Shown piece after piece: positions 5,758-38,957 of a stretch of DNA of 53,433 nt (within the stretch, counting starts at the first letter, position 1; every line of letters starts with the position of its first letter). The translations under genes were made by a program, and so were the position numbers. Under the pieces are notes generated by a model. It did not search any database, had not been told where the DNA came from, and saw only the letters and a program-made list of their open reading frames with translations. The stretch is from contig MCFE01000608.1 in assembly GCA_002104905.1 (NCBI GenBank), positions 1 through 53,433 of the forward strand. Reading direction: 5' to 3'. The DNA comes from Basidiobolus meristosporus CBS 931.73. Its lineage: Eukaryota > Fungi > Basidiobolomycota.

Positions 5758-5859
5758 TCCTTAAGGCATTGGTAGGAGCTAGAGTGAATAAGCCAACAAG
5801 AGTATACAGATGCAAATGTAAGTCCCAAATTACTGAGAACTGTTGTAAAAATTTGTAAT

Positions 5860-11049: not shown

Positions 11050-11900
11050 GTTGTAAGAGTCTTGGCAATATCAAAAGTGATTGGGACGGATAAGCAGACT
11101 GTGTGATTATTCACACTTGATCAATTGCTGAATGTGTGATGAGTATAAAATACTACTTTTACTATGGTTTTGGCAAATAACAAGCCAGTAAAGTATAGTC
11201 TCAAGAAGGCCCCAAAGAGCATGTGTGCAAGCTTGGGCTGTATGAGCAATGTGAGAAGTTGGGTTTTTTAGGCACCTGATATTTTTGGTGAAAATATCAT
11301 TAGTAAATCCTAACAAGGAATTTGGTTGGAATTCTTTGAGATCTGTAGACCTATGAGCTAAGTGACTATTTTAGGTTTATGTTTGTAACCAATTACTATA
11401 TTTGTAACACCTAAGAGCATAGGTGTAAAGTTTGGGACTGTTTGGTTAACTTTAGAGAAGCTTCATGTCCTAAGTACCTGATGTTTTGGTGAAATTATTT
11501 CAGGTAAATCTTGGCAAGGAGTTTGGTCAAGAGTTTTCTAAGATCTGTAGACTATAATCTAAGTGAATGTGTAATGTGAATATCTTGGTGTAAATACAAT
11601 ATTTGTAACAATTGGTAGAACTAAGTAGATTGTGTGGTTTTCATTCAATGAATTAGCAATGTAAAAGTGATATTTTCACTTTAGCATGGTCTTGGCAAAA
11701 CAAACATATAGAACATGCCTATGATGACTCCATGTAGTCTATGTGCATAGTGTAGGTCTGTTTCAATTATTTTAAATTATTTGGTGTACTGGGTATCTGA
11801 TATTTTGGTTAAAATATTGCAAATATCCCTAGAAGAAATTTGGCCAGAATCCTCTAATATATGCTGACAATGAGCTAGGTGACCAAGTATGGTGAGTATT
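11050..11900 (+). repeat. Three tandem subunits of the dispersed AT-rich repeat family
   Basis: Recurrent (aag)ttt/cttggg(g)ctg, tacctgat.tttt.ggtgaa and gatctgtagac..(t)gagctaagtga blocks. Boundaries approximate. Confidence 0.65.
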
Positions 11901-12339
11901 TAGGAGTAATTTTGAGATTTGCAACATATATTTAGGTAACAGTTCAATTTTTCATGTAGGGAATATGCACCTATGAATTTGACATTTCTTCATACAGGGA
12001 ACAATAGAGGATACCTAGGTGCACTCAACTTAATATTGCAATGATGAAATTTGTGCATTTACCTTCAGACAGTCATTGTCTAAAGGTAAATCTAAACATG
12101 TTTAGACAGAATTAGGGCTAGTTGATTTGAGTATTTAGTTATGTAAGAGTGTTTTAAGCTTTGTAATTGCACCTAAATATTCCCTTAACTTGATCACTTA
12201 CATCATGGTTTACAAATCTTAGAGTATTATGCTCAAATTCTTTGTAAGGGTTTATTCTGAATACTTCACCAAACCATTTGGTATCTCTAGGAATAAGAAG
12301 TCCCAAACTTAAGTTAAGACTCCCTAGCCTAGCACACAT

Positions 12340-12495
12340 TTTCTTGGTACCCTCCTGAGCAAAACTACCTGTTTATCTTGCCAAGACCATGTAAAGTACT
12401 AATACAACCTTAACATTTGATAAATCATCAAGTGAAAACCATGTAATCTATTTATTCTCTCTATCACTTGTGGTATCAGCAAAACTCTTACAACA
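12340..12495 (-). repeat. Fragment of the dispersed AT-rich repeat family
   Basis: gccaagaccatgtaaag...aagtgaaaaccat...aaaactcttacaaca matches 6070-6185. Confidence 0.6.
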
Positions 12496-12726
12496 CAAAC
12501 TAGCATTGAGGTGGTACATAACAGTCAGATGAATAGATCCAGAATTATTCAACATTGCAGTTGAAAATTCAAAACTCCTACTTTGAAAAAATACAGTTGA
12601 CATCAAAAGTCCACTTGCAGCATATATATACCATTGTCATGCATTACAGTATTTTATTGCAATAACTTATTGACTCATAATTTCATTGCATTAGTAAATT
12701 TTGCTGTATTACCCATGCCTCTTTCC

Positions 12727-13921
12727 TTATTGAAACGTGAGTGAATAAGGGCGCAGTGCACCCAAAATTTTGCCAACGAAGTCAAACTCATCCTTGGAGT
12801 TTTCCAAAAGCATCTCTGCCCTTGACTCGCCAAGCAACCTACCTGTCAACGCAGAATGCAGTACAGAAAACCTAGACGCTGTAACATGTGCAGTTTAGTG
12901 TGGTGCTTAGGGAAAAGTGTTAGAGGAAAGATAGGTACCTAGAATTTTCTTCCCATCAGGAATGGCACTATAATACAGCTCTTTCAAGCAAATATTTGCC
13001 TCAGCCGATATGCAGCCAATAGATAGCAACAGTAAATCAATGTGAAGCAATTGACCTATAGAATCCCTTCTCCACACGGAAAGCAGCTGGTCACGCACTA
13101 TCTTAGTGATTGGCGGAAATTGACTGGCACATAGCTGCTGGATCCACCGAAGAAGTAAACCGGCCACCTCCTCTCGAAATGTATCCCTGCCTGAACGAAT
13201 CGTGATGTGCTGGGAGCAGGATGCTAGACTACTGCCAATCCTGATCAACCGCTCAATATTTGTGGATAGCTCAACTACTGCTCTTCCCTATCGTTGGTCA
13301 GTGAAAACCACGCTGTAAAAGTCTAGAATAAGGACGGTACCTGACTCTGGGCAAGGGTAACTGTCTTCAGTGCCGCTTCCTTTGTACAACCAGTGGCCTG
13401 TTGAAGCTGACTAATAGTCGAACTTAGATCCCCCGCTTGGCCCATCCAAAGAACACAGGCGAAGACAGTTTGTTCGACCTCTTTGTGAGATATATATGAG
13501 CCGGCCACTAAGGACTCCTCTCTAATGCTACGTGATTCCAAGGTTTGTTGTGACCATCGGGGAGGGGAGGAAAGATATGTTTCGAGAATAAACTTAAAAA
13601 CTGTGGCAATGGTCTCTTTTATAGCGGCTGATAGGTCTTCTGGCAGTGCTTCCAACGCAAGTGTCCTAGTATGTCTTGGTAGGTAATTTTGTCTAGTTCT
13701 TTTGCTCCACTACTATAGAATTACCTGTCTTCGATTGTGTCTTTGGGACAGAGTAATTCCTGGTACTCATCGCGATTATTGGTTACTGAAGTCAGAAAAG
13801 CCAGTAATAGCTCAGCTTCCACTGAAGCTGTTAGGAGATACTTATGATAATGAGGTGCTTGGTGCAAGTATTGGGAAAGAGCAATATTTTTCTGCAACTT
13901 ATCAGTTATTAGAGAATCCAT
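12727..13921 (-). CDS. Ubr1 (N-recognin)-derived protein lacking the UBR box, 340 aa, 4 exons (13921-13725, 13665-13341, 13287-12939, 12878-12727)
   Basis: Three GT-AG introns (59, 53 and 60 nt) join into one open 1023-nt frame. Ubr1-like segments: LPEDL..IKETI..VF.FI....SSP, ClpS-like LQQATGCTKEAA...GRAVV, TIRSGRDTFREE, LKELY...KKILASRFS. Family call is from motif memory; BLAST/HHpred is needed. Confidence 0.75.
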
Positions 13922-15581
13922 GAATACCCTTGTGTCTAAATACACTAACTGTTAGCAACTGAAAAGTACTATCCTCCTTCTTATCCATTATATCTCTGCT
14001 GTCAGTATATCTCTACCCTAGGATCATTATACTTTATTTAGCAAAATCAAGCTCACCACTGGTACAAAGGTTGGCTAATTTTGTATCTCTCAGTACAACA
14101 AAATGACGTGGACAATGCTTATCAAATCAACCCCATGTTTCTAAATGTTTAGTTTATCATTTGATTTGATAGCTATACACTTGTTAGACATAATAATAAG
14201 TAGATTGACGGTAGAAATTATATTGAAGCAGTTTATACTATACATTTCTCTACATCAAATTTATTGTGTATTGCCTGCATATAAGAGGACTCTTTTTCTA
14301 GATGTATTGGAAAAAATGAAAACAAAACTGTGACATCAAATATCTTCTCATCACTAAGCCTCAGTAGGTTGGCAACATACTGTCTATGAATTGGGCAGCT
14401 TCATAACTAATGCACAACAACTAGTAGTGATTAAGAGTTTGATGCATAGATTTTGTAACCCAATGAAGAACACAGTCAACAGGCTTGTATATAATAAGAG
14501 CTTGTGAACTCCAGATTGCATGATAATACTCTTAGGACTTGATATCAATGTGCAAAGTAAATAATTTGATATCATCACAGTTTCAAAAAAGTACTTTACT
14601 TTGAATCCTAGGCAGGCCCATTCTTATGTTCTTTGTTCCTAGAAAGTATTCTCATTACCAATATAACACTTCGAGAGCAGTATCACACACTTCAAGAGCA
14701 GTAACCATGAGCAGACATATACACATGTATTAAGGGAAATCTTGCTTGAAATCAGCAAATTAGAAGGGTACAGGATTGCAAACTTCACAGCATTATATCA
14801 TGGTTATGATCAAAGTCAAGAAACCTAATACAATACTAGTAAACCTGCAAATCTGCGGTTGGTGAGATTGCAGCCAGCATGAGGCTTGTCTTATATAGCA
14901 GCTTCAATCTTATACAATTGGTTGTAGATTTTGCTGATGCTGACGAAACAATATAGAATGAAGTCGGGTATTTTGAGTGGCTATGAATTATGCGAATTGA
15001 CTCTCAGAGTCAGAAATTGAAATGACTGGTTGCGGCATTGTCTCATTCCTGGCGAATCAGTAGAGAAACGATATCGAGCATTTTTGTGGCTGTGCGATTG
15101 ATCGATTGATTTCGAGTGGACTCTTTAAAAGGTATTTGCGGGGATATGCAGGTTGATGAATGGCCAGAATGTACATCGAACACATGATCCATATCTGGTT
15201 CAATTTGAAACACAGCTAATGCAGTCATCATCTTTTACTAGACAAACGAAGCGCTCCAGTCATGTGATGCATCAATATATCTTCCCATAAATGCTCACTG
15301 ATCTACACTACTAAGGTATTTTCTCCCCTTGGCACTAGACTCGGAGGTTTCCGTTTGTAGTTTCAACAGAACAGATATGCATAGATGGAAACAGCACGAA
15401 ATCAATGGTTCAATCAAGCAGCACTTTCTCCAAGATAGGCAATGCAGTAATGAGTGTGTCAAGTGTGTATATGGGGCTTATTTTCCCATCATACAGAATA
15501 GCCCGATATCCATCGGTTCCCAAGTCCATATATTAGCCACCATTCTATTTGGACAGGTTAGAATTTATGACAACTCCTATC

Positions 15582-16330
15582 CTAGCATGCAATACCCGAG
15601 CTGAACAGATCATGCTCAGCCTTGCGTCTTCTAACTAGCCCTGGAAGCACCCTACCACCTCCGTACACCCATAGCCCAAACTCTGCCTCTGCAGCGTTAT
15701 TGTTTTCTTGGTTGATTAGCCTGCGCATGTTGGAGTTGCGGAGACCCCCCACACCCGACATTGAACGAGAACGATACCAATGAAGAACTCTGTTTGAGGT
15801 GATAGGGACCAATATGAGCTCACTGACACATTCCTCGAACTCGGCCATATCTCGTCGCAGCAAATCCTCACCTCGAGCAACAAAAAGAGGTGGATAGATA
15901 TTGGCACAATGGGTGGGGTCCGAATGGCAAGTATGGCCATAGCCAATGGTCCTGATGCCCGCTGGGCCAATGTAGAAGTTGGGGAACCAACCCTCAATGC
16001 TTTGCACCAAGTCTAAGTCCGCTTGGTTGATGTGACCACTTCTATCACCTCCATTCCTCCCACTGCCCCCGTTCCGGTCTCGATGTATTTGTCAAACACT
16101 CAGTTCCCACTGGTCAGCTAGTCCTAAATATCATAGCCATTCACGAACTCTCCAGTTCCTTGGCATTGAATGCTAACCCAGTCTCCTTGTTCAGTGTTCC
16201 TACCTGCAGGTAGCCTGTTCCTGCGCCTGAGCGGACTCTCCCTCCGTCATCGCGGATCGGGAATGCGTTCCCATCTGCCTCAGAACACCTTGGCACGCCA
16301 AAAAAGATGGAAAGGCTGTACACGTAGAGG
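15582..16330 (-). pseudogene. SH3b-linker-GH24 (phage-lysozyme-like) muramidase pseudogene
   Basis: GH24: INQADLDLVQSIEGW..FYIGPAGIRTIGYGH...LPGLVRRRKAEHDLF. SH3b: FPI....RVRSGAGTGY.QVGTL and, after a shift, CQGTGEFVNGYDI*D*LTSGN*VFDKYIETG with three stops. The 5' boundary is uncertain. Confidence 0.85.
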
Positions 16331-18380
16331 GCAGTGCTGGATCGTGAGTGAACGAATACATGGTATCCAATGCTCCACGACTGGGGAGAATAGCACCCTG
16401 TGATATGGCACAGCTTAACCGAGCGGGGCTTTCCGAAACCATGCACGCTAGTTTATGTTAATGCGGCTCCAGAAGGACACGCATTACAGCATCTCATCAG
16501 TATTTACAAACGAGGCAAAGCTTTAGGCACAAACCCAAATCCAGGACTTCTTTGCACGTCGTACTTGGCTGATTGAACATGGAGCGCAAATGCTTCAACA
16601 CCCTACAGTATTGGACCTAATCTTGCTTCCTATATTGCAGCGCATCCATCTCTGAACGCTTGTGATTACATTGACCGACTTGCCATTGAACGGAACTAGT
16701 GCTTTCACCATGCATGAAAACTAGGTTGGATCTCCATGTTACTGCAGCTTTCCACATGCACGAAAACCATATTGGATGCGAAGTACGAAATTTGCGATCA
16801 TGAATCAGCAAACTGTATCAGTTATACAACCCTTTGTTAAGTATCCTACTATCTTGGAATGGCTGTTCATAGATATGTGATTCCACACAAACCAACAACA
16901 CTTCCAACATTTTCCGTGTGATCCAATATATACCGCTCTATTATGTAATCTTCATCATCATCTTTGGTTGCAATTTCTCCAATCGCTTTCCACACCTGAA
17001 TACCTATCATGGGTCGAGTACGATCGATCTTGCTTCATTCTACTTCCCGATAAACACCCATTTAGTCAAGAGATACGAGCGCTGACGTCCACTGAAGCAC
17101 TAGAAATGCTTTCTGTATGGCAAGTTGATCATATGTCACCACCCCATCCATAGATGCGATTGGAGGAAACAGGAGAATGGATTTGTCTGCTGACAAAAAA
17201 CCTCGATAATGGGAAATTCATGATGTATATCTGGTCGTTTGACAATCATTATCTCTGGATTTCTATCCAATAACGAGATCTGGATCTGGGTAAAAATAGA
17301 TTCTGAACTAGTTACACATGAATCCCGATACGATTTCTGCTTGTCTCATTCAACTATAAGCCTCCCATTGCTCGAGTGAAATCTCCTCGACTTCCACTCT
17401 ATGTATCTCGGCTACAACCTGGTTGTGTTGCGACTACTGAGAGAACATCAGAATCTCCATACGTTTAAGGGGGTTTCTGGCGCTTCGGTATTGCTAACAA
17501 TATAGAAATTAAGCTATTTCAGGACCATGTTGCATTGTATATATCCTATTGCTCCTCCATTCACATTGTTCTAGTAGCATTCTGCGATAAGCATCAATTC
17601 ACTGGACATAGATTTGGTCATTAACCCGATTGGAGACCGCGACAACTCAATCCGGATTGCTTGTAACACACATCCTTGGTATTTTCAATATGTTACAGCA
17701 GCTCTCTGCTGATTCATGACGAGGCTGAAACGTACTGAAGGTAGCTTTATTAGAACGATAACAGATAGTCACTAGTGACTGGAGGGAAATCTGTTGGGTG
17801 ATCCAAATGATCCTCGGTACGGTGTACTACGGGTAAGTAATGTGTGTTATGGTTGAGTAGCGTAACTTCAATATTCCAACAGCCTCTCGCCTCACTTGGA
17901 GCTTATTTTACGCACTTTGCATCGTGAGAACTCCCCTATATTAAACATGATTCCTACATCTACCAAGAGATGCTAACGGATGGATAGAAACAGCGGAGGA
18001 TGGCTGCGATAACCCTAAATTGAGCATGTAGTCCATAGAGATGTGATGGTGCAAGTAGCAGTGTCTGTCAGTCGTAAGTCGAGGATACGTCACTTGACTC
18101 TGCCGGCCAACAAGATAAAGTTGGCAGGGAGGTGAGGGTACAAGACCAGTGATACTAGTGAGTGTATAAGTAACTGATGGCACAAGCAACCGATATAGTG
18201 ACAGGGCTGGCTTCTGAGGACAAATTTAGAGCACCAAGAGCCGATAGAGCTTGTCTTGAAGGATATATCTAGAGTGCCAAGAGCCGATATAGAGTTTCAA
18301 GGAGCACTAACTTCCATGAGGGTGTGACATGCGTTGAATTGCACCCTGGTAACTCTAAGTAAGCTGCAGAGTTAAATCTT

Positions 18381-19580: not shown

Positions 19581-21604
19581 AACAGGGAATATGGCCAGAG
19601 CTCTCTAAGTGTACAGAAAGCATAACTGCTACATGGTCACTAATAGTAATAGCGCAGATGGTAGATATCTTAATATAAGTGGCGTTGTAGTGGCATTGCA
19701 GTGACATCTCCAGTGTATATTTCCATGGGTAAAGTCTTATGAATGTATGCTGCGGATAAACTTCACCACTAGTCACTACTCTAATGAATGAAAAGTAACT
19801 AAACTTCTTATCCCACTTAGTCGTCGTAAAGAATACAACATATTTCAATTCCCAAGTGGGGCAGCAAAGTTGAGTACTGAGGTATCTGAGTAATATAGAG
19901 GTAAAGCAAAGGCATGGTAGTTGGCATTTGGGTAATTGAATTTGTCAAGTGATGGCACTTTGTATTTCTAGCACAAGTCAATGTGGGTAAACAGATTGTA
20001 AGATTCACTCTATATTGCACCTGGAAGTGTGGACCAGTAGGCGCTCAGCAGCAATTCACCAAATTTGCCATGCTCTTTCTAGGTACAATAACTGAGGCTG
20101 CTACAGCTGGGTCAAAGGAATGCGGATTCGAACTCACGTATCACCTTATCCTGATGGTGGCTTGGTGTTGTGGCATTATGCTAATGGCTGCTTCATGTGC
20201 CCTTTACTACTAAGTATAGTGGCTTCCCTCCTAAAGTGCTAAGTCTTAGGCCAAGCTTGGAGAAATGATCTAGAAATCGTGAATGGTTACAGTTGAGGCC
20301 AAATCTGCAACATTACCTGAGGAAACGAGTTTGACAACATATTGACTGACAATGATTAAATGAGTAATTGCACGGAAAATATAGGAATCACTATCCTTCT
20401 CAACATATTTTTCCATTGAATAGCGAGGCAAGGAGCGTAATCAACTTCGATTCTGAGGCCATAGCCCATTGCCAAAATTCATCAACGGAAAGTCCAACTC
20501 AAAGCCATTAGAACCATCACACATTTATAGTCTCTATGGCCCTGGCTGATGTCTTACCGTACTGGCTAAACACAACCGTGAGTATTTCCTTCTTGCCAGT
20601 CATTGGTGACAAGGATTTGCACCAATTAGCAACGAGTCTGTTCTTGTAATAAAAGGTTATATAATAAACCTGCCCAAAAGAATGACCGTGGTAGTCGGTG
20701 GCTGAGCTCTTAATCCAACGCTGTACTCCATCTGTGGCAGGGTGAAGTTAGCAATAGATAAGAGCATGTGTCTAGCAAGAAAGCATTGCTATCCAAGCTA
20801 TCGATTGTAGTGGCATAATTAAGTGAACAGTCACATTTGGCTTGTTTCTTGACAAATAACTAATTGAAAACGCGTATACTACAAGAAATTCCAAGGCAGC
20901 CTCAACTATCCCAAGCACTATCCACTCAATATCCCCAACTCTTGGCAAACAACTAATCAATTTATTCTCGCCTGTACTGTGCTGTACACCACATGACAGT
21001 CGTATTGTTCACCAACCAGCAACAACCCTAGGTTCTTCTAATAACAGGTTAATTAAATAAGCCTGCCCCAAAGCTTGACTGTGGTGGCTGCTCTCCAGTT
21101 GCGGCAGGGTAAGATCAGCAATATATATAAGCATGTGTATAGCAAGAAATCAACACTACCAAAGGACAATACCTTGCAGGCAATGATAGGACTATCGTAA
21201 GAGATACTTGCCTTAAAGATGGAACAAAGATACCAAGCTCACAGGACAAAGTACCATCCAGGAAAGCTACACTGATACAAAGGGAGAAAAACCCGTTGAA
21301 AATGAAAGACAACGACCTTGGAGTCTATCGACGGTAATCTTTAAGCTCATTAGTAAACAATTACCAAAGTCCTTACTAATACGGATAGCTATTGCAAAAA
21401 CTGAGAGAATTTTGAATGATATTAAGGATATCATTGACCAGATCGCCCTCATTCTTCACACTTTGAAGTACAACATATACAGTGTAGCCTTGTTACAAAG
21501 AGGTCAAGTAGTAAAGGTTAAATCAATCTAGCTCGCATAAAGCTAGTGCTATGAACGAAGCCTAATTGAGTGGGATCGAGGTGATATAAATCGGCAAAAT
21601 TCGC

Positions 21605-22150
21605 ATGAGGCTCTACCATCCAGTCATGCAGCTTTCCTTCCTCTTACTAGTTTCCGCCATCGCTTCGTTGCAAGCAATCTCCGCCACCCCACTCGGTGAC
21701 TCCCAGGTAGCCTTCACCAATGAGCCATGTGTCGAACAACAGGGTGCTTGTTATCAGGACACTTCAGCCCCCAGTCAAGAATACCAGCCGTCAACTGAGG
21801 AGGGTGATGATTCGGAGATGAGTGAGCCAATGCAAACAAGCGAGACTTCGGGTGAGCAGCCAGGATTCTCTGGATTGCAAGGGTTCGACATTTCCAATCT
21901 TCAACCATCCCAAGCCTTACTGGATGACATCAATGGCCATTCCTCCAGTAAAGCCAATGCCTTGTCCAACTCAAACCAGTTCGATCAGGCGCAAGTCATT
22001 GATCAAACCCTCTACCAGCCCAAGCAGCAACAGCCCCAAATCATCATCACTCAGACAGCAGCGCGTGCGCTTAGAGGAGGGTACAAGAAGTATAAGAGAT
22101 CTGCTCGTCGCCACTTCAAAATTAGATATTTTAGTGGAAACAGACATTAA
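21605..22150 (+). CDS. Secreted precursor: signal peptide, acidic spacer, cationic C-terminal peptide (181 aa)
   Basis: Hydrophobic MQLSFLLLVSAIASLQAISA; D/E/Q/S-rich middle; last 29 aa contain 11 K/R and no D/E; TATA (gatataaat) ~25 bp upstream; paralog at 35154. Confidence 0.8.
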   Translation: MRLYHPVMQLSFLLLVSAIASLQAISATPLGDSQVAFTNEPCVEQQGACYQDTSAPSQEYQPSTEEGDDSEMSEPMQTSETSGEQPGFSGLQGFDISNLQPSQALLDDINGHSSSKANALSNSNQFDQAQVIDQTLYQPKQQQPQIIITQTAARALRGGYKKYKRSARRHFKIRYFSGNRH

Positions 22151-22511
22151 GTCTAGTAAAAGCAAATTTAGGAAATAAAATGAGCAACATATTACTAGGT
22201 ATACTGATGATGTACAAGTACTCAAGAATTTGCTGATATGCACACGCAGAAATAGCGTCCCTTATCGTTGTAAATAATGGCATAGTTTGTATTGAAGAGA
22301 ATTGCGTGTGATAGAACCATATATATACAGAGGCTGTCATTCCAGCGCATGCGTTTTATATGTTACAAGTTTCCTCAAAGTCCATAACAGAATGTAAACC
22401 ATGCGCAACCTAATAAGACTCACTTTATGCCTTCGGTTTAATTTTATTATATAACCTCCCATGCTATATAGCGGCCTATGCAACAAACCTATTTCTCAGC
22501 CATTCTTCAGC

Positions 22512-23007
22512 ATGCGTTCTACTACCATAGCAGTGATTTGGCCTTGCCGCTCTTCAAGTTGCCGTTGCTGCCCCAATCGGCTGTTCTTCTCCATGCAGTC
22601 GCGAATATAAAAGGGTTCATTATCGCAGCTTACCTTGTGCACAGTAGGCAAACGATTGCCACCAAAACGCTCGAGTGTTACCTGTCGTTAAGCCGTCCAA
22701 TGTCCAATCCCCATTGTTGCGCCAGGTTTTCACCACGGTGACCAGAAAGCACGATAACCTGAACATTGCTAATGCCAACAGCAATAAAGGCTTCAATGCC
22801 AAGTATCAAGAAGGACCCAGTCTCGAACTGGAGGGTGGGGCCAACGCATCTGAATATGCCAAGCAAAAGGGAGCGGAGCACTCGGACGATAGTTCTTTCT
22901 CTCCCTACGCTCTGATGCAGCCCACCCAAGATGTACAATACACAACCCCTGTGGCAGAAATGCAATGCGTAGAAGATTGTTCAGAACGAAATGTTCAATA
23001 CAGTTAG
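22512..23007 (+). pseudogene. Secreted protein gene 2, disrupted copy
   Basis: Paralog of 36064-36444, with a 2-nt deletion in the signal-peptide region and an in-frame TAG. The C-terminal part is open (22675-23007). Confidence 0.7.
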
Positions 23008-23426
23008 TGCGGTGACAATCTCGCCCAACTCAATGCGCTGAAAATGTAGGCAGCCATCACCACACTATTACTGGAAATCTTCAATCAATAAAATTCAAAT
23101 GACATTCTTGTATTTGTTGTCACTAGTGATTAGCTTTAACTGTGTCTCCAGCGCTTTTTACTGGTACATACATGTATCATGATTAGAACTGCGGGCATTA
23201 GTATTTGATATTCACTTACGTACTAAAATACTAACCCAGTCTTTAGTAATGCTACCCTCCACCGAAAAGTATGATATTAGAGAGAATATCTGTCAGTGTT
23301 ACCGGATTGATCTTGGTAACACAAATATTCGAGATTGTCAGACTGGTCAGTGACTGTTAGCATTGTGATATTTCCTTGTATGGTACGTGTAATCATTTTG
23401 TGCAAGCTTTAGGAATATAATAAAAG

Positions 23427-23508
23427 TGATGAGGGTGGGGTTCGAACCCACGCCTCCGAAGAGACTGCGACCTGAACGCAGCGCCTTAGACCACTCGGCC
23501 ACCTCACC
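23427..23508 (-). tRNA. tRNA-Leu(CAG)
   Basis: GGTGAGG acceptor stem, CTGCG-TTCAGGT-CGCAG anticodon arm, long variable arm, GGTTCGAA T-loop; followed by a CTTTT Pol III terminator. Confidence 0.97.
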
Positions 23509-23517
23509 AGCCCATTC

Positions 23518-23827
23518 TGTTATGAATCGAGGGCAAGCGGAGGAGGACCGGAGGATGTCCAATACGAATCAGAGAGGTTATCTGAATAGTTGATGAACCG
23601 GTAAAAGGTTGATGCTTTATTGATAGTGTTCAAAGGAGTTTATATAGAGATAGCCTCGGAGGGAGAGCTTCCGATAACGTAGGGCAAGCTTCCAAAAGGA
23701 GGGTTCAAGATGTATTAAATAACGTGTGTATCACTGAGTGCGATTGATTGTCTGTGTGTAATTCCAGGTGTTCGATCAGTAGTGTTCAAGTGATCGGTAG
23801 TGACTAGTTAGGATTTAAATCATAACA
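23518..23827. mobile_element. Solo LTR family A (310 bp), TSD ATTC
   Basis: TGTTATGA...TCATAACA, flanked by ATTC at 23514-23517 and 23828-23831. Confidence 0.85.
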
Positions 23828-23832
23828 ATTCT

Positions 23833-24058
23833 TGTTATGAAAGTCTGAATCCCGACCAGAACAGGCAGCAAGTTGTCGCATATAGAGATGCGTCAACACC
23901 AAAAATCATCAAAGATGATCAAAGACTGATGGGCTAAAGTAAGACAAGTTGTATGCAAATGATCGAGAAATGTATAAAAAGTAGATCCTACGCTAAAATA
24001 AAGGACAGACCTTGTTACACCAAACAGAAGGACTGGAACTGGCCTGGATTTCATAACA
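23833..24058 (+). mobile_element. Solo LTR family B (226 bp), TSD TTCT
   Basis: TGTTATGA...TCATAACA; appears to differ from 36704-36929 by one base; TTCT on both sides. Confidence 0.9.
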
Positions 24059-24062
24059 TTCT

Positions 24063-24297
24063 TGTCGTAGTATGTACTACCAAGGGTGTTAGCCGGAGAT
24101 TGGTGTTCAAAGGTCGAGGCCGGAAGGAAAGACTACTTTATTTTCTAACGTGTTTTGCTATTTTATACTTTGGTGAACTACGTTTGCTATATGCATGTCT
24201 TAGCCGTTTTGCCTAATTTTAGTAATACTCGACGGATGGTTCAGGGGTAGGTCTCTGGTTGTGATGGTTTGAAGATGCTGATGACCTAACCACGACA
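24063..24297. mobile_element. Solo LTR family C (235 bp), TSD TTCT
   Basis: TGTCGT...ACGACA, flanked by TTCT at 24059-24062 and 24298-24301. Confidence 0.8.
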
Positions 24298-24300
24298 TTC

Positions 24301-24627
24301 TATTACAGAGTAAAGAGTCACTCGATGTTAAGTGACATCAACGCATACAAAGACGACTTAGTAGCCAGGGAAAAGCAAATCAAAGACAAATCACCAGACT
24401 CACAACAAGGTATAAATACCAAACAAGTAACTAAATAAAAAGGGGTTTTTTGGTTATAGGCAGAAGAGCGTAGTAGGAACGAATATTAGTTTGAATATAT
24501 TTCTACAAAGTCACCACCCTAACCTTTTAAGAGATATTCTTACACTACCCCGTCGAATCTACAAGATAACATACACGTTATCCCTTTTCGTACTCTCTAA
24601 AGGACATTACTCTTTAAGTACGTAACA
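24301..24627. mobile_element. Solo LTR family D (327 bp), TSD ATTC
   Basis: T(A)TTAC...GTAACA followed by ATTC; homologous to the segments at 25062, 29926 and 38034. Confidence 0.75.
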
Positions 24628-24632
24628 ATTCA

Positions 24633-24727
24633 TGTCGCAAAGTAAGGAGTTAACAAATGTTAATTGACATTAGCGCATGCAAAGACGACTCAGTAGCCCA
24701 GTAAAGAAGATAAATTGCATATACTCA
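24633..24727. mobile_element. Truncated LTR E (D-related), shared with duplicate B
   Basis: TGTCGCAAAGTAAGGAG...ttgcatatactca, near-identical to 38034-38128. Confidence 0.75.
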
Positions 24728-25440
24728 TAATACCGATCCTTCTCCGCTTACCCTTGATTCATAACAGTTAAGGATCAAGGGCAAGTGGAAAAGGATCGGA
24801 GGATATTTGATAAGCATCGGAGAGGGTGATCTGAATGATTGATGAACCCGTGAAAGGTTGATACTTTATTGATAGTGTTTAGAGGGGTTTATATAGAGAT
24901 AGTCTCGGGAGGAGAGCTTCCGATAACATAGGGCAAGCTTCCAAAAGGAGGGTCCAGGATTTATTAAATAATGTGTGTATCATTGAGTGTGATTGATCGT
25001 CAGTGTGCAATTCAAGGTGTTTGATCAGTAGTGACTAGTTAGGATCTAAATCATAACATTTTGTCACAGGGTAAGAAGCTACTTGGTGCTAAGTAACATC
25101 AACGCATACAAAGACGCCTTAGTAGCCCGGAAAAGTAAAAGAGACAAATCACCGTACTCACAATAAGGTCTAAATACCAATTAAACAATCAAATAAAGCT
25201 CAAGTTTGGTTAGAAGTAGTAAGAACGGTAGATACGATTACGAGTCACCATCATAGCCTTTTAACAGATATTCTCACACTATCCCGTCGAATCTACCACA
25301 TAACATACACGCTATCTATCTACGTACCCCACATCTTATTACAAAGCAAGGAGTCACTCGATGCTAGGTGACATCAACGCATACAAAGTTGACTCCAGGA
25401 CAAAAGGGACAAATCACAATAAGTATAAATATATTCTATC
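24728..25440. mobile_element. Older LTR debris: inverted A terminus (24728-24766), A copy (24767-25058), D-family copies (25062-25440)
   Basis: Sequence similarity to LTR-A and LTR-D; CATAACA end at 25058 and TGTCAC start at 25062. Confidence 0.7.
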
Positions 25441-26849: not shown

Positions 26850-29469
26850 CAAAATTATCAACTGTCCATGCGATATTCTGTGTAGCATTTCCAGTCTTCA
26901 ATCATCAAAAGGTTGGCTAATGTACTGTCCTACTTGAACCAGCTACTCCCTCCAACCTACTTGTTGAGTATAGATTAGCATACGTGTTAATTCTCCTTCA
27001 AAGCCTTCACCACTGTGACGAGAAAATATGGCAACAGTTATAAATGTCTCAGTACTTTGAACCAGAACAGAACTAGTAGCAACGTAATATGTATGTTGCG
27101 TTTCAAGGGTTCATATCTGAAAGACGCACAAGACAGAACATACTTTCCCTCACTTGACCCTTACTTTACAAGCAAGCTATCCATTATGGCAAATTGTACA
27201 CCCAAATTGACAATGGTAGAACTACTCACTTCTGTCATTGGAAAGTGGAGGTAAATGTATAAGCAAAATCACTTATGAGGTTGTTGCTAATTAAACAAAG
27301 CAACGAACAATTGTGCTACAGATTGGTAAAGCTGGGTTGTGTCAAGATTGTATGTTGCAGTAGTCCCAACATTCACTCTGTGTTATAGGCTAGGCAATAT
27401 AGCAACACAGGTAATCACTGGAGTATTCAGCTATTCTTCAACATGTGCTTTACTTCCATAGTAATGAATCTAGACCATGCTCCAAATCAGGTTACCATTG
27501 CCACCCAATCTGCTGTTTGTTTTCATACACTTGCAAATATAGAAGGGCACATTATTGCAGTTTACTATGTGCACAGCATGTTGATTATTGGCCTTGAAGC
27601 TAAAAGCAATGGAGTCCATTACAATTGTTTGATTTTATATTTTACTTTCATTTTGTCTGTGACTATAGAACATAGTTATAACTTGGCTGATACTCATCAC
27701 CAATATTTGGGAGCTTCGGTGTATTTAGGATTGTTGCAATAATGGGGCGGTGCCTCTTTGAGCCGACCTCTTTGAACTTTGAGTTCTTGGTTGTTATCCA
27801 TTCGTCTCACTGTGAGATAGTCGTTGTTGCCTAGTGAGCCACACTCATTTGCATCCACAATCCAAACCACCAAACCTTCATAGCTATAGTTACTCAAGAT
27901 TAATGGCATATTTCATATACTGTATTCTAGACAGACTCTCACCTTCTAATGTTACCAATTGAGTAGAACCCGGGGTAGTGATAAAATAGGTTGGCAAAGT
28001 TTGGGGGTTCCCTCTGACTCATTTCTTTGTTTTGCGTACAAATTCCAATACGAGAAGACTGATTTTCTATAATGCTGAGCACGCTCAAGTGTTATAAGGA
28101 CAAGTTTTCATAATTTAGAAACTAAACGTGTCTCGGATCAGCTTGGGTAGAATGACCTATACTCAATGTGCTAATAAGTATGGTTAATGACTGTTTGTAG
28201 CGGTTATTAAAAAGCAAACATGCATTCCGGGATGAAACAGCCCACAAAGCTAAGGAGCTGCTAAGAGACAGTGATGGGTAATAATTGTGCTATAACCAAG
28301 CTTGTTCCAAGATATCAACTCATGACCAATATTTTGAGCACTTTCAGATGCAGCTCTATAATAGCACTATTTATGATAGCTTGACTCATATCTTAAAACT
28401 TGTTGAGATGATTTGTTGTCCAGTATCACAGATAGCATATTCATGAATGTTGGCTGGCCTGTAAGTCCGGAGCCATATAAAATGTTTTGGGCAGCCTCAG
28501 AAAGCCTTGTACAAGATCAAGCATGGATATTTGGTAAAACCTTGCATAACAACCGCCCACACAATTCCGCAAACTTCCACCTTAATAATCTCTGAGACTT
28601 TAGTATACTGCATCCTTTTTGACTCTGACAAAGTGGTATTGAGACATGATCCACTTAGCTTTATAGCCTAGAAAATGAGCCTCATCTGACAAGCTCCAGA
28701 GCAATTGTGCATTTACTCCAATGGATGAGGAAGCTCTTTCACCAAACAAACTAAGTGACATCTTGAAGGATCTTTTGGTCAAGCATACTAATCCCATCAT
28801 AATGACGATTCTCTTGAGTAATGCTGTCAGCCAAATTACTTTTCAGAAACTCGTCAATATCAAAGACAAGATTGGAACCGATATGAAGAACATCCTGGAA
28901 GTCACCCTTCTGGGACTGAACCGGCTACGCGTCAGCTTCCCACAACCAAAAGTATATTTTATTTTGCGAGGCATGGTCAATCTGAATAAATCAAAATATG
29001 GAGTGGTATTGTACAAAGTTAAATCATACTCGCGCATTTTAAATAATTTTTTAAAAATACCTATGACCCATGCAGAGTTACAGAATGGTAATCTTTCAAT
29101 AATTATTACAAACAGTACAAGCAATTAAAAGGCCAATTTTCCCGCGCAAATACGACAAATATACAATGCTGTATACTGTAGTACTGCTAAAGCACTTGAA
29201 CCAAAACAGCAGAATATAATCATAATATCAGCTGAATTCCAGGTTTCTGTTCAATGTGGCAGTGATTGCACTAATCAGGACTCACAGTATACTGCGCCTA
29301 CAGAAGATACTCAATGAATCCAAAGCCAATCAATTTCCATTGTTCAGTCTATTGGTTGTCTTCAATGTAATAGACGCATAGTAAATCAATTTATGAGAAT
29401 ATTTGCATGGGTTGTACATCTGCTGTACCAGTTTGTATTGATGCTCCAAGTAGCAACTGGCAAGGCAAC

Positions 29470-30098
29470 CAGGTGAAATTAATCTAGCTTGCATAAAGCT
29501 AGCATTAACAAAGGAGTGGGATTGAGGATATAATACAAATATGCAATTTTGCAAGAGACTCCACGTTCATCTTGCTAGTCTCCACCACGCATCATTGCAA
29601 GCAATTTTGACTACCCAACTTGGTGATGCAGACACAAGAATAGCGTCGCTTATTGTTGCGCATAATGACATCACCTGCACTGAAGAGAAGTATGGGTAAT
29701 GGTGATAGAACCCTAAATATACACTGAGGCCAACATTCCAGTGTATGCGTTTTGTATATTACAGGTTTCCTCGATAAAGTCCAAAAGAGAATGTGAAACA
29801 TACGTAATCTGACAAAACTCACTCTGTGCCCTTTGGTATCACAAATATTTAAGATTGTAAGGCTGCTCAGTGACTGTTAGGATCATGATATTTCCTCTTA
29901 TGGTTGCTGCAGCCATTTTTGGACATATAAATACCAATCAAACAATAGAATAAAGGAGTTATTTTGTTAAGAGTGAGAAGGGCGGTAAAATTACCTTGAA
30001 TATATTTCTACAAGATATTCTCATACTACCCAGTTGAATCTACAAGATGACATACACGTTAGTCATTTACGTACTCTTTACTCATTAGTTACCTGACA
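29470..30098 (+). repeat. Third, internally deleted copy of the duplicated segment, followed by an LTR-D 3' fragment
   Basis: Contains, in order, the gene-1 promoter/signal region, the inter-gene spacer and the tRNA 3' flank, then LTR-D sequence ending TGACA|TTCT. The tRNA itself is missing. Confidence 0.7.
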
Positions 30099-32194: not shown

Positions 32195-32500
32195 TTGTGG
32201 GCAAATTATGCAGTACAAGAGCTTAAGGGTCTTGGGGATATTTGTAATGATTGGAAGAACAAGTAGAACATGTAATCTTTACTCAATTATTCATCAAATG
32301 AAAGGGTTTTACTTATACTTCTAGATGGTTCTGGCTAAGCAAACATCATAATTATGATTAGGAGGGTACTGACAACAAGTGTGCCAAGCTTGGTGCTGTT
32401 TAGACAACTTTCAAACTTCTTATACCCCAGGAACCTATTATTTTGGCAAAATATACCAAGTATTGCTCAGCAAGAAATGTGGCTAGAGCTCTCTAAGATT
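32195..32500 (+). repeat. Copy of the dispersed AT-rich repeat family
   Basis: gtgtgccaagcttggtgctgtttagacaactttcaaa...ttttggcaaaatataccaagta. Confidence 0.6.
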
Positions 32501-34465: not shown

Positions 34466-35153
34466 GGCGCCTTCCCTGAATGTCAAGACTGCGGTAGTCA
34501 TAAGCATACGTACTTGCCACCTCGCAGTACAAACCAAAGCGTGAATGTGGTAGTCGGTGGCTGAGCTCTTAACTCGACGTTGCTCTCCAGTTGCGGCAGG
34601 GTAAAGTCAGCGGTATATAAGACCATGTGTCTAGTAAGAAAGCGAGATACATTTGGCTTAGCAACACTACCAATGACCCGCAATACCAACGGACAACACC
34701 TTCCAGGAGATGATAGGACTACCGTAAGTAGCACTTGGCTCAGAGGTGGAACAAAGATACCAAAAGGTGTGCATATTAAGCTCATAGGGCAAAGCACCAT
34801 CCAGGAAAGCTACACTGACACTAATGAAGAGCCATGCCCCATTGAAAGTGACCATAATGACCTTAGAGTCTATCGACGGTAATTTTTAAGCCCAAGGGTT
34901 ACTGCCCATTAGTAAACAATTACAAAAGTTCTTACTAGTGCAGACAGTTATTGCAGAAGCTGAGACAATTTTGAATGTTGTTAGGGACACCATTGACCAG
35001 GTAGTCCTCATTATTCACACTGTGTAGCCTTGGTACGAAGAGACAATGTAGCAAACGGTGTGGCACCCAGGTTAAATCAATCTAGCTCGCACAAAGCTAT
35101 AAGCGAAGCCTAATTGAGTGGGTATGAGAAGGTTATAAATCGGGAAAATTTGC

Positions 35154-35703
35154 ATGAGACTCCGCCAGCCAGTCATACAGCTTTCCTTCCTCTTGCTAGT
35201 TTCCGCCATCGCTTCATTACAGCATCTCCGCTACCCCACTCGGTGACTCACAGATAGCCTACTCCAATGAGCCATGTATCGAACAACTGGGTGCTTATTA
35301 TCAGAACACTTCGGCCCCCAGCCAAGAATACCAGCCGTCAATTGAGGATGGGGATGATTCGGAGATGACTGAGCCAATGCAAACAAGCGAGACTTCGGGT
35401 GAACAGCCAGGATTCTCTGGGTTGCAAGGGTTCGATATTTCCAATGTTCAACCATCCCACACCTTGTTAGACAGCATCAATGGCCATTCTTCCAGTAAAG
35501 CCAACGCCGTGTCCAGCTCAAACCAGTTCGACCAGACGCAAGTCATTGATCAAACCCTCTATCAGTCCAAGCAGCAACAGCCACAAATTATCACCACTCA
35601 GCCAACAGCGCGTGCACTTAGAGGGGGGTACAAGAAGTATAAGAGATCGGTTCGTCGTCACTTCAAAATCAGATATTTCAGTGGAAACAGACATCAAGTT
35701 TAG
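35154..35703 (+). pseudogene. Paralog of the cationic-tail precursor, frameshifted in the signal peptide
   Basis: caagcaatc becomes cagcatc (two AA-to-A losses). Downstream frame is open through RALRGGYKKYKRSVRRHFKIRYFSGNRHQV. The shift could be an assembly error. Confidence 0.65.
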
Positions 35704-36063
35704 TAAATGTAAATTTACGAAATAAAATGAGTAACATACTACTGGCTATACTGATGATATACAAGTACTCAAGCATTTGCTGGTGTGTACATATGGGAAT
35801 AGCGTACCTTATCATTGTACATATTATTTGCACTGAAGAGAATTATGGGCAGCGGTGATAGAACCCTAGAGATAAACTGAGGCTGGCATTCCAGTGCATG
35901 TGTTTTATAGGTTACAGGTTTCCTCAAATAATGTCCATAACAGAATGTAAAACATGCCTAATCTAACAAAACTTACTTTATGCCCTCGGGCTAACCTTGC
36001 TATAAGCTTCTCATGCTATATAGCGGCCTATGCAACTAACCTTTTTCTCACCTATTCTTCAGC

Positions 36064-36444
36064 ATGCGCTCTACTACCATAGCAGTGATTCTAGGCCTTG
36101 CCGCGAATCAAGTTACCGTTGCTGCCCCAATCGGCTGTTCTTCTCAATGCACTCGCGAGTATAGAAAGATTCATTATCGCAGTTTACCATGTGCACAGTA
36201 TGATTGCTGCCAAAACGGTCGAGTTTTACCTGTCGTTAAGACGTCGAATGTCCAATCCCTATCATTGTGCCAGGTTTTCCCCGCCATGATCAGAAAGCAC
36301 GATACCCTGAACATTGCCAATGCCAACAGCAATAAAGGCTTCAACGTCAAGTATCAAGCAGGACCCAGTCTCGAACTGGAGGGTGGGGCCAACGCATCTG
36401 AATATGCCAAGCAAAAGGGAGCGGAACACTCGGACGATAGTTGA
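36064..36444 (+). CDS. Secreted protein gene 2 (126 aa, Cys-containing N-terminus)
   Basis: MRSTTIAVILGLAANQVTVAA signal-like start; open frame; C-terminus shorter than the 22512 copy because of the flanking deletion. Confidence 0.6.
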   Translation: MRSTTIAVILGLAANQVTVAAPIGCSSQCTREYRKIHYRSLPCAQYDCCQNGRVLPVVKTSNVQSLSLCQVFPAMIRKHDTLNIANANSNKGFNVKYQAGPSLELEGGANASEYAKQKGAEHSDDS

Positions 36445-36609
36445 TCTGCATCGTGGTCATCCAGCCTACAACTGACAGTGCTACACGTTTGATCTCGGTA
36501 TTACAAATATTCGAGATTGTCAGACTGCTCGGTGGCTATTAGGATTGTGATTTTTCCTCTTTTGGTTGCTGCAATCATTTTTGTGCAAGCTTTAGCAACA
36601 TAGAAAAAG

Positions 36610-36691
36610 TGATGAGGGTGGGGTTCGAACCCACGCCTCCGAAGAGACTGCGACCTGAACGCAGCGCCTTAGACCACTCGGCCACCTCACC
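36610..36691 (-). tRNA. tRNA-Leu(CAG), identical to 23427-23508
   Basis: Same 82-nt cloverleaf, with a CTTTTT terminator. Confidence 0.97.
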
Positions 36692-36931
36692 AGCTCATTC
36701 ATGTGTTATGAAAGTCTGAATCCCGACCAGAACAGGCAGCAAGTTGTCGCATATAGAGATGCGTCAACACCAAAAATCATCAAAGATGATCAAAGACTGA
36801 TGGGCTAAAGTAAGACAAGTTGTATGCAAATGATCGAGAAATGTATAAAAAGTAGATCCTACGCTAAAATAAAGGACAGACCTTGTTACACCAAACAGAA
36901 GGACGGGAACTGGCCTGGATTTCATAACATT

Positions 36932-36942
36932 TGGTAGCAGCG
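36932..36942 (+). promoter_or_regulatory. Primer-binding site complementary to the initiator tRNA-Met 3' end
   Basis: TGGTAGCAGCG 2 bp downstream of the LTR's CA; TGGTAGC is the established iMet PBS of Ty1/Ty3. Confidence 0.8.
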
Positions 36943-36974
36943 AAACAACAAATAATCCTCCAAACTACAAGAAA

Positions 36975-37790
36975 ATGAGTACTAGCAAGAGTACTAAAGG
37001 AAGCAGCCCTGGTGAAGACATTAATGCATTGCTGCGAGAGCAATTACAAGAATTGAAAGAAGAGAACCAGTGGCTAAAAGCACAGTATAGTGCACAGGAA
37101 GAGTTGCCTACTAAAGAAGATATTCTGAAGGCATATGGAAGTTTGGAATCTGGTCATGCAAAGTTAGCAAAGCCTGATACATTCGACGGGATGTCAAATG
37201 TGGATTTTTTTTTTGGTCAAATGTGGATTCTTGGATTTTTGAGGTTGAAAAATACCTAAAATTCACAAACGTTAGTAAGATGCAAATGGTTGATTATGCA
37301 TCAAGTCTGTTCAGGGGACAGGCGCTATTGTGGTGGAGGTCTCACATGAAGAGGGTCCAAGAAGGACTTGAAGTTGAAATTGAAAAGTGGAACCAGTTTA
37401 AGCAAGAATTGAAGGCAGAATTCAAGCTTGTGACAGCAACTAAACATGCTAGAGATAAACTGGCACAGCTAGTCCAGAAGGGAACAGTTAGCAGCTATAC
37501 CAATGAATTCAAAAGTATCCTATTAGAAATTGATGGAATATCGGAAGATGAAATACTGGATCGATATGTACGTGGACTCCAAAAGTCCACCAGGAAAGAA
37601 GTGGAGCTTCGAGATCCAAGCTCATTCAAAGAGGCCCACAGGATTGCAGAAAGATATGACCAGATTATGTTTGATAATGTACACAGCACAAAAAAAGAAT
37701 CACATGAAGCTGACAAGAAGTCTACACCAAAGAAAAAAGATGAGTATTGCATCAAACATAACTTGTGCTTTAAATGCAATAACATTTATG
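36975..37790 (+). pseudogene. gag interrupted by a 22-nt insertion (14-bp duplication plus poly-T)
   Basis: gtcaaatgtggatt is repeated around the T-run at ~37205; removing the insert joins ORFs 36975 and 37223 in frame. Confidence 0.8.
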
Positions 37791-37803
37791 TTCATAACAT
37801 TCA

Positions 37804-38029
37804 TGTTATGAAATCCAGGCCAGTTCCCGTCCTTCTGTTTGGTGTAACAAGGTCTGTCCTTTATTTTAGCGTAGGATCTACTTTTTATACATTTCTCGAT
37901 CATTTGCATACAACTTGTCTTACTTTAGCCCATCAGTCTTTGATCATCTTTGATGATTTTTGGTGTTGACGCATCTCTATATGCGACAACTTGCTGCCTG
38001 TTCTGGTCGGGATTCAGACTTTCATAACA
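37804..38029 (-). mobile_element. Solo LTR-B, inverted, TSD TTCA
   Basis: Reverse complement of 36704-36929; TTCA at 37800-37803 and 38030-38033. Confidence 0.9.
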
Positions 38030-38033: not shown

Positions 38034-38285
38034 TGTCACAAAGTAAGGAGTTGATAAATGGTAAGTGACACTGGCGCATGCAAAGACGACTCAGTAGCCC
38101 AGTAAAGAAGATAAATTGCATATACTCACAATACGGTATAAATACGAGCTAAATAATCGAATAAAACGGTTAGTTTGTTAGAAATGAGAAGAGCGGTAGA
38201 AATGGTTATTATCTTGAATATATTTCTACACGTCACCAGCCTAATATTTTAAAAGATATTCTCATACTACCCCGTTGAATCCACT
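38034..38285. mobile_element. LTR E/D-family copy
   Basis: Starts TGTCACAAAGTAAGGAG and matches 24633-24727 and LTR-D; 3' end degraded. Confidence 0.75.
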
Positions 38286-38852: not shown

Positions 38853-38957
38853 ATGCGCTTTACTACCGTAGCAGTGACTCTAGGCCTTGCCATGAATCAA
38901 GTTGCCGTTGCTGCCCCAATCGGCTGTTCTCCATCAAAACCCATTTTGTTGTACTAA
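38853..38957 (+). pseudogene. Signal-peptide fragment of secreted gene 2 (34 aa)
   Basis: MRFTTVAVTLGLAMNQVAVAAPIGCS, followed by an early stop. Confidence 0.6.

Follow-up and report, generated by a model that had tools for sequence, protein, structure and literature searches.

In the genome of Basidiobolus meristosporus CBS 931.73 (assembly GCA_002104905.1), an early-diverging fungus of the Zoopagomycota, a tRNA-Leu(CAG) gene carries on its 5' side a stack of five long terminal repeats (LTRs), and comparison of this stack with paralogous loci makes it very likely that LTR retrotransposons integrate here serially, at a position set by the tRNA gene. The stack lies on contig MCFE01000608.1, whose 53,433 nucleotides were analysed in full and are called the window below; its layers are designated A to E outward from the tRNA gene. 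An Hsp70 gene of the window had its exact protein match on this contig alone, and members of a small secreted-protein family encoded near the tRNA gene carry the name of B. meristosporus CBS 931.73 at NCBI, in agreement with the assignment of the DNA. At least three and probably four LTR families (A, B, D/E, and probably C) would have integrated one after another at the gene, each at a fixed 9-14 nt upstream of the mature tRNA 5' end and each with a 4-bp target site duplication (TSD). Every newcomer would have landed between the tRNA gene and the earlier arrivals, displacing the older elements outward, and LTR-LTR recombination would then have collapsed most of the elements to solo LTRs. As with Ty3 and Tj1, the guide would most likely be the initiation complex that RNA polymerase III (Pol III) uses on the tRNA gene (TFIIIB/TFIIIC).

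Structure of the stack and comparison of paralogous loci

By direct reading and by scripted extraction, the plus strand of the first locus runs agccc-ATTC-A-ATTCT-B-TTCT-C-TTC-D-ATTCA-E (Table 1). Five scripted insertions into the host sequence agcccattca, each made at offset 5 or 6 with duplication of 4 bp, regenerated positions 23509-24729 exactly, and the layout given in an earlier first-pass annotation of this DNA was thus accurate to the base. The duplications of the reconstructed stack fall at -6 to -9 or at -7 to -10 relative to the mature tRNA 5' end, meaning that the insertion points are one base apart, with the proximal ATTC of the A duplication at -6 to -9. Comparison between loci showed that paralogs retain agcYcattca or agcccattct in these tRNA-proximal host bases. 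That annotation had also counted five insertions with 4-bp TSDs, which stands for A through D; E is only a truncated LTR whose 3' side is gone in every paralog, leaving its TTCA duplication uncheckable.

Loci for comparison were sampled through a secreted-protein family encoded 1.3 kb from the tRNA gene, which gave nine further contigs of the same assembly. The resulting sample holds 12 paralogous tRNA-Leu loci on ten contigs (228.6 kb, or ~229 kb), with the tRNAs annotated and one common definition of the 5' end; it is biased toward one paralog family, yet ordinary sequence flanking the loci makes up ~200 kb. An LTR starts 9-14 nt from the tRNA at 9 of the 12 loci, and the other three are empty. 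We counted four independent insertions of D, at least two of A, at least four of B and one of C, for a total of 11 that are lineage-specific, in addition to the ancestral E. Once D and one CTTG are removed, locus L007 is colinear, with no gap, with the empty site of L005b, and the D elements of L007 and L008 entered one and the same host sequence with a two-base offset between their insertion points. In L011, the closest paralog of the second window locus (W2; 92-96% identity in the flanks), the solo LTR A3 occupies the place held in W2 by B elements. A single inherited insertion as the source of both the first-locus A and A3 was considered and rejected, since their TSDs are offset by one base and W2 is without A. 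All matches to the A-E library in the 228.6 kb sit in tRNA-proximal stacks, and none was found away from them. The shared target and the repeated, independent insertion by several LTR families upstream of tRNA-Leu, as proposed earlier, were therefore borne out by the 12-locus comparison and its empty sites. Targeting had been called base-precise, which describes the first locus (9 or 10 nt); across the families the insertion points fall within a ~6-bp window (9-14 nt), and there was no Ty1-type spread over hundreds of base pairs.

Perfect 4-bp TSDs flank A (ATTC), B (TTCT) and C (TTCT) at the first locus, the inverted solo B (B2) at W2 (TTCA), the D copies of L007 (CTTG) and L008 (TACT), and A3 of L011 (TTCT), while the flanks of D in L009 (TTTG/CTTG) agree at 3 of 4 bases. 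Extension of the repeat to 5 bp fails for all clean cases, so that the 4-bp length first suggested holds throughout, with sequences that differ among loci. Outside the first stack four solo LTRs each have a perfect 4-bp flanking repeat and, since all mapped copies sit in tRNA-proximal stacks, chance is excluded as an explanation.

Table 1. Features of the window, upstream sequences of the paralogous tRNA-Leu loci, and related elements. Positions refer to the window unless another contig or locus is named; W1 and W2 are the first and second tRNA-Leu loci of the window.
Feature	Position	Strand	Description
tRNA-Leu(CAG), target gene (W1)	23426-23508	-	ARAGORN; 5' end points toward LTR stack; upstream agcccattc(A..)
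Host bases agccc + ATTC	23509-23517 (23509-23513 + 23514-23517)	.	nine bases; ATTC is the proximal copy of the 4-bp TSD of A
Solo LTR A, 310 bp	23518-23827	- (predicted)	TGTTATGA..TCATAACA; ATTC/ATTC on either side
ATTCT spacer	23828-23832		between A and B
Solo LTR B, 226 bp	23833-24058	+	10-bp terminal inverted repeat; TTCT/TTCT on either side; Ty3/gypsy family
TTCT spacer	24059-24062		between B and C
Solo LTR-like element C, 235 bp	24063-24297	- (predicted)	TGTCGT..ACGACA; TTCT and TTC+T on either side, final T being the first base of D
TTC spacer	24298-24300		between C and D
Solo LTR D, 327 bp	24301-24627	+	TATTAC..GTAACA; ATTC duplication now split by later layers
ATTCA spacer	24628-24632		between D and E
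E, 100 bp	24633-24732	+	5' stump of old D-related LTR
LTR debris distal to E	24733-25440	.	matches no paralog colinearly
Inverted A start, 34 bp	24733-24766		head-to-head with A2
A2, A-family copy	24767-25058		followed by TTT
D2, D-family piece	25062-25327
D3, D-family piece	25336-~25440
3' part of E-type LTR	29926-30088	+	in third, more diverged unit copy; tRNA and first ~110 bp of LTR deleted
Second tRNA-Leu(CAG) (W2)	36609-36691	-	ARAGORN; identical to first; within ~90% segmental duplicate of 20677-23517; upstream agctcattcatg(B1..)ttca(B inverted)ttca(E')
Truncated B element B1	36704-37799	+	12 nt from tRNA, after agctcattcatg
Inverted solo LTR B (B2)	37804-38029	-	perfect TTCA/TTCA
E', paralogous copy of E	38034-38284	+	3'-truncated, joined to host sequence as in L005a, L008, L010 and L011
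Dispersed ~350-bp repeat	5842-6186, 11410-11904, 12160-12495, 32224-32462, 41918-42530; L011 6721-7068
Full-length B element, 4571 bp	L008 (MCFE01000115.1) 12429-16999		two LTRs, primer binding site (PBS), polypurine tract (PPT), gag, pol
Locus L005a			upstream agcttattct(E)
Locus L010			upstream agcttatttt(E); tRNA degenerate
Locus L011			upstream agccca TTCT (A3) TTCT (E); A3 solo LTR 10 nt from tRNA
Locus L008			upstream agcttg TACT (D) TACT tg(B full length) tctt (E)
Locus L007			upstream agcttgta CTTG (D) CTTG gacactacg..; tRNA pseudogene
Locus L009			upstream tgctaatgtg TTTG (D) CTTG t(E); D at 14 nt
Loci L005b, L006, L013			upstream agcttgtacttggtcattacg..; no LTR (empty)

The same stack could in principle have been built by elements that recognise a short TTC-rich motif or the ends of resident LTRs, as a nest of insertions at LTR boundaries in which each TSD regenerates the motif. 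All five junctions of the first locus do carry ATTC, TTCT or TTCA, and any order of insertion at LTR-LTR junctions gives the same sequence, except that D must precede C. However, in L007 D entered an LTR-free site beside the tRNA for which an empty-site paralog exists, outside W1 D used CTTG, TACT and TTTG, and the many TTCT and ATTC sites away from tRNAs in the 229 kb are all unoccupied, by which this explanation is largely refuted and, in our judgement, very improbable. Because the TSDs differ in sequence (ATTC, TTCT, TTCA, CTTG, TACT) at a conserved distance from the gene, and because D could enter an LTR-free site, we concluded that the target is a position, and not a motif or the ends of LTRs.

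A stack of single LTRs might also arise if paralogous tRNA-Leu loci, each with one LTR, exchanged sequence by recombination or gene conversion, or if the assembly had joined such paralogs into a chimera. Material for such exchanges exists in a family of no fewer than 12 paralogs, in which identical tRNAs are accompanied by a wide variety of LTRs, and the structure distal to E is rearranged and contains a palindromic A junction. Nevertheless, the A-D junctions all fit a perfect 4-bp TSD with no base extra or missing, which recombination or misassembly would not yield, the duplication of C includes the first base of D, which is the signature of insertion beside a resident D, and each LTR is shorter than one long read. 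We regard an origin by recombination or misassembly as highly unlikely and serial, position-directed integration as the far better account of the stack.

Identity of the LTR families

LTRs A, B and C all have TG..CA ends, with perfect terminal inverted repeats of 8, 10 and 6 bp, respectively. The first-locus D starts with TA owing to a G>A change, and the three other D copies read TGTTAC..GTAACA. Internal coding sequence was recovered for B alone; A, C and D were identified as LTRs from their termini and TSDs, and A and D also from further copies.

The full-length B element of locus L008 has Pfam domains in the order Retrotrans_gag/Ty3_capsid, zf-CCHC, RVP_2, RVT_1, RT_RNaseH, Integrase_H2C2 and rve, that is, gag followed by protease (PR), reverse transcriptase (RT), RNase H and integrase (IN), as in the Metaviridae. 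The PBS (TGGTAGCAGC) starts two bases past the 5' LTR, the PPT reads GAAGAAGGGGAAAA, and the closest relative of its pol among solved structures is the Ty3 Gag-Pol (7q5b, E 1.5e-96). Judged by these domains, B is a Ty3/gypsy element whose LTR status is beyond doubt. The first-pass annotation had spoken of several gypsy families, and for B this assignment was borne out by gag, zinc knuckle, PR, RT, RNase H and IN in gypsy order; for A, C and D, which are represented by solo LTRs only, membership of the gypsy class is presumed. The LTRs of the L008 element are 96.5% identical (8 of 226 positions differ, mostly by transitions), its gag is split into three open reading frames (ORFs) and its pol into two. 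Based on the diverged LTRs and the broken reading frames, this copy is old and dead, unlike the three nearly identical B LTRs of the window, in which the first-locus B is 99.6% identical to those at 36704-36929 and 37804-38029, with 0-1 base differences.

In the truncated element B1 at W2, the 5' LTR (36704-36929) is followed by TT, a PBS (TGGTAGCAGCG) that is probably of the initiator-tRNA type, by its A1:U72 signature, and a frameshifted gag that matches Pfam Retrotrans_gag and Ty3_capsid. The element breaks at ~37782, ends in ..ttcataaca, and is 94.6% identical to the L008 element over 1090 nt. A protein search with the B gag returned only relatives of at most 46% identity from metagenomes and other assemblies, the collection evidently being without the transposon proteins of this genome. 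No tRNA was present on the contigs of these gag relatives, an integrase query from one of them matched thousands of metagenomic chromoviruses but none from Basidiobolus, and pol remnants were not found in the window by tblastx with the gag-relative elements.

The A family comprises three copies, all solo LTRs, with A 86% identical to A2 and 89.6% identical to A3 of L011. The D family comprises four copies, likewise all solo LTRs, and the first-locus D is 92-96% identical to those of L007, L008 and L009. The count of four distinct LTR sequences made from the first stack has to be revised in that D and E, at about 75% identity, are members of a single superfamily, of which the sample holds fourteen pieces; E is 92% identical to E' (38034-) and 88% to the E of L011. 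A TATAWAW-24 nt-AATAAA signature points to a minus orientation of A, and C has its signature on the minus strand, like that of the other families. On this criterion A and C lie in the opposite orientation to B, D and E, and W2 also contains an inverted B. Orientation is biased within families (D 4/4, A 3/3 and B 3/4 one way), and both orientations occur overall.

No second copy of C was found in the 229 kb sampled, and C is missing from all paralogous loci. A structured RNA gene or a piece of host DNA was considered in its place and rejected, given the lack of an Rfam match, a fold z-score of -0.5 and its absence from all paralogs. On the basis of its LTR termini, 4-bp duplication and TATA-to-AATAAA signature, C is probably the solo LTR of a rarer family, less certain in this respect than A, B and D.

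Order of insertion

If elements insert at a fixed distance from the gene, the newest is always the innermost. The proposal that new elements land next to the tRNA and move older ones outward agrees with the position of the ancestral E, which is outermost in all five multi-layer loci (W1, W2, L008, L009 and L011), a result with a probability by chance of 1 in 180 by our arithmetic. In an LTR tree, the E-type LTRs cluster by host locus and the D copies form a tight clade. Since the E-type LTRs also share a 3' truncation fused to host DNA, E predates the duplications of the locus and is the oldest layer. The distal duplication of C uses the first base of D where the host had A, so D was present before C. 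With only 0-1 base differences from the B LTRs of W2, B must be very young, and its place is inward of the older D. The first-pass annotation had read the complete chronology from the TSDs; only D before C is forced by them, as A, B and C can be removed in any sequence with consistent duplications, and an order from TSDs alone was rejected. From the fixed distance we infer the exact age order A<B<C.

Targeting mechanism

Ty3 and Tj1, which behave in a like manner, read the Pol III initiation complex, and by analogy the Basidiobolus elements would most likely read TFIIIB/TFIIIC. The fixed position upstream of tRNA-Leu on which the original proposal of Pol III targeting was based has been confirmed, and the involvement of Pol III and TFIIIB is suggested by this position; for a specific contact with TFIIIB we consider the chances about even. 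If the Pol III complex is read, duplications at -6 to -14 would imply short tRNA 5' leaders.

In Ty3 a vestigial chromodomain at the integrase C-terminus, about 65 amino acids after the C-terminal domain, contacts Brf1 (PMC8632968). The first-pass annotation had recommended examining the integrase C-termini of recovered elements, and for B, as represented by the one degenerate copy of L008, no Pfam match to the canonical chromodomain (PF00385) was found after the integrase. The gap from the end of its GPY/F module to the 3' LTR is 95 nt, or 31 codons, and the alignment to Ty3 extends no further than residue 1432 of 1547. With only 31 codons after GPY/F, this integrase would have no room for a chromodomain of the Ty3 type. 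The metagenomic relatives reached through gag do carry a chromodomain.

Targeting may therefore be tied to the tRNA gene by a mechanism that arose independently and does without the Ty3-style contact between integrase chromodomain and TFIIIB, for instance through an integrase surface that binds TFIIIC or a Pol III subunit (compare Ty1 and AC40), or through bent, nucleosome-free DNA at the start site. Besides the short B integrase, a TSD of 4 bp rather than 5 and the use of one site by families with unrelated LTRs point in this direction, as do DGLT-A of Dictyostelium, which targets tRNA genes without a chromodomain (PMC5006619), and the convergence reported for Ty1 and TRE5-A (PMC6101501). Conversely, a window of a few bases near the expected start site is the pattern of Ty3 and Tj1 and not that of Ty1, with its ~1 kb (PMC5911963), the B pol is closest to Ty3 among solved structures, and the B integrase is judged from one degenerate copy. 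On balance we give an independent mechanism somewhat less than an even chance.

Several observations weigh against serial, Pol III-guided integration in the manner of Ty3. The TSD is 4 bp instead of the 5 bp of Ty3, and the B integrase, as predicted from the L008 copy, cannot carry the vestigial chromodomain that contacts Brf1. The link from the insertions to Pol III, TFIIIB or the start site is one of analogy, and the loci compared are all paralogs of one tRNA-Leu family, which limits generality to other Pol III genes. In the B copies that retain internal sequence a TG precedes the 5' LTR, and a clean TSD of 4 bp is missing. Finally, A has 25 private differences relative to A2 and A3, which by sequence sits uneasily with its place as the youngest layer; A may form a subfamily of its own, or the layers may have arrived in a less simple order. 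A 4-bp TSD is common among other gypsy-type elements.

Other features of the window and of the sampled loci

W2 has layers of its own, which outward from the tRNA are B1 at 12 nt, the inverted solo B and E'. Both B elements that bear internal sequence have their 5' LTR separated from the flank by a TG dinucleotide (window 36702-36703 and L008 12427-12428), which gives apparent 6-bp repeats (TTCATG/TTCATG at W2 and TACTTG/TCTTTG in L008). Three possible sources of the TG were considered, namely a TSD of 6 bp, an element that entered a resident LTR two bases in and later underwent a deletion, and a complementary DNA whose end was left unprocessed, but none of them fits both W2 and L008.

Beyond E, the window contains additional LTR pieces (the A fragment, A2, D2 and D3) that were absent from the earlier description. 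Abutting the broken end of E, the starts of two A-type LTRs meet head-to-head in a palindromic junction (24731-24801), which has sub-threshold matches to Rfam microRNA hairpins and is possibly a scar of rearrangement or autointegration.

The tRNA-Leu(CAG) gene forms part of a ~2.8-kb unit with two small secreted-protein genes (ORFs of 181 and 126/165 amino acids) that is repeated in tandem in the window. The copies at 20677-23517 and 34536-36700 are ~90% identical, a third at 27388-29919 is without the tRNA, a further piece lies at 38841-38930, and the unit is also found on at least nine other contigs. The 83-nt tRNA-Leu is identical in 7 paralogous loci whose flanks differ by 5-30%, and the tRNAs of L007 and L010 are internally deleted pseudogenes. 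About 105 nt upstream of the tRNA, L006 (11983-12143) and L007 (~12170-12340) have an extra ~160-bp segment relative to the otherwise colinear L005b, which may be a small insertion in L006/L007 or a deletion in L005b.

Two other repeats were noted. The window region 39180-40455 consists of twelve diverged copies of a ~93-nt repeat with long ORFs on both strands, of which the minus strand encodes a Gly/Asn/Ser-rich repeat protein, and L011 13042-14358 is colinear with it. A dispersed ~350-bp repeat (Table 1) occurs in both orientations at 70-89% identity and is unrelated to the LTR families.

Comparison with known tRNA-targeted elements

The usual explanation for the habit of using tRNA genes as a safe haven is that elements adapted in this way to compact genomes. 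Among the elements known to have this habit, Ty3 resembles those of Basidiobolus in being a gypsy element that inserts in either orientation within a window of a few base pairs upstream of tRNA genes and leaves solo LTRs (sigma) behind; its PBS is likewise of the initiator-tRNA type, two bases past the LTR, and its Gag-Pol is the solved structure to which the B pol is most similar. Ty3 integrates 1-4 bp from the transcription start site (TSS) (PMC5006619, PMC8632968), with cuts at -6/-2 from the TSS, a 5-bp TSD and an integrase that contacts TBP and Brf1 (PMC8632968). In Basidiobolus, by contrast, the TSD measures 4 bp, the LTRs start 9-14 nt away from the mature 5' end, a chromodomain would not fit into the B integrase, and the host is a zoopagomycete and not a yeast.

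Tj1 of Schizosaccharomyces japonicus places its insertions 5-11 bp ahead of the mature 5' ends of tRNAs and strongly favours one orientation (PMC4600332). It is also of the gypsy type, its distance is nearly equal to that seen here, and D and A likewise keep to one orientation each. It differs in having a 5-bp TSD and an ascomycete host whose tRNA clusters and Tj elements form centromeres, and its targeting is established by experiment whereas that in Basidiobolus is deduced from genome structure. DGLT-A of Dictyostelium discoideum, a Ty3/gypsy element without a chromodomain, is found upstream of tRNA genes at distances of 13-33 bp, with a mean of 15 (PMC5006619), and is thus similar to B in targeting this region with no chromodomain; its host, however, is an amoebozoan with a compact genome, and the element has a single ORF and a broader distance window. 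The gypsy-type Tyl6, Ylt1 and Tyl3 of Yarrowia lipolytica and beta/Tca8 of Candida albicans, which are listed in a table of PMC5911963 as lying upstream of tRNA genes at distances between a few bp and 30 bp, all have ascomycete hosts and are likened to the Basidiobolus elements by description only. The copia-type Ty1, Ty2 and Ty4 of Saccharomyces cerevisiae share with them Pol III genes as targets and mosaics of solo LTRs upstream of tRNA genes, but they insert over a window of up to ~1 kb through contact of integrase with AC40 (PMC7459421, PMC5911963), as against about 6 bp in Basidiobolus.

A 2018 review of Pol III-targeted retrotransposons treats only elements of Saccharomyces, Schizosaccharomyces, Candida, Yarrowia and Dictyostelium (PMC5911963), and a survey of tRNA targeting covers dictyostelids and Protostelium (PMC5006619). 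In the literature we found on retrotransposons in Basidiobolus or the Zoopagomycota, mostly titles and abstracts, tRNA targeting is not addressed, and in the reports found, as far as these reach, tRNA-targeted LTR elements come only from ascomycete yeasts and dictyostelid amoebae (slime moulds).

These elements may bear on how start-site targeting evolved, as at least one tRNA-targeting family of Basidiobolus (B) appears to have an integrase without the domain that sets insertion in Ty3. They offer a natural comparison for asking whether such targeting is ancestral in fungal Ty3/gypsy elements or was repeatedly invented, and which surface of the integrase reads the Pol III complex. The empty, single-layer and multi-layer tRNA-Leu paralogs are ready filled and empty pairs for dating the activity of each family, and annotators should be warned that tRNA flanks in the B. 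meristosporus genome are mosaics of solo LTRs. If the order of layers is as proposed, paralogous and allelic tRNA loci would serve as replicate tapes of transposon activity. It is possible, and we suggest it only tentatively, that several unrelated LTR families lack the chromodomain ruler of Ty3, that start-site targeting of tRNA genes arose or persisted in the Zoopagomycota through a different contact with Pol III, and that tRNA genes thereby became ordered, datable records of insertion. Compared with Ty3, Tj1 and their relatives, the habit itself is known, and what is added here is putative start-site targeting of the Ty3/Tj1 kind in an early-diverging fungus, by several families at once and with 4-bp TSDs.

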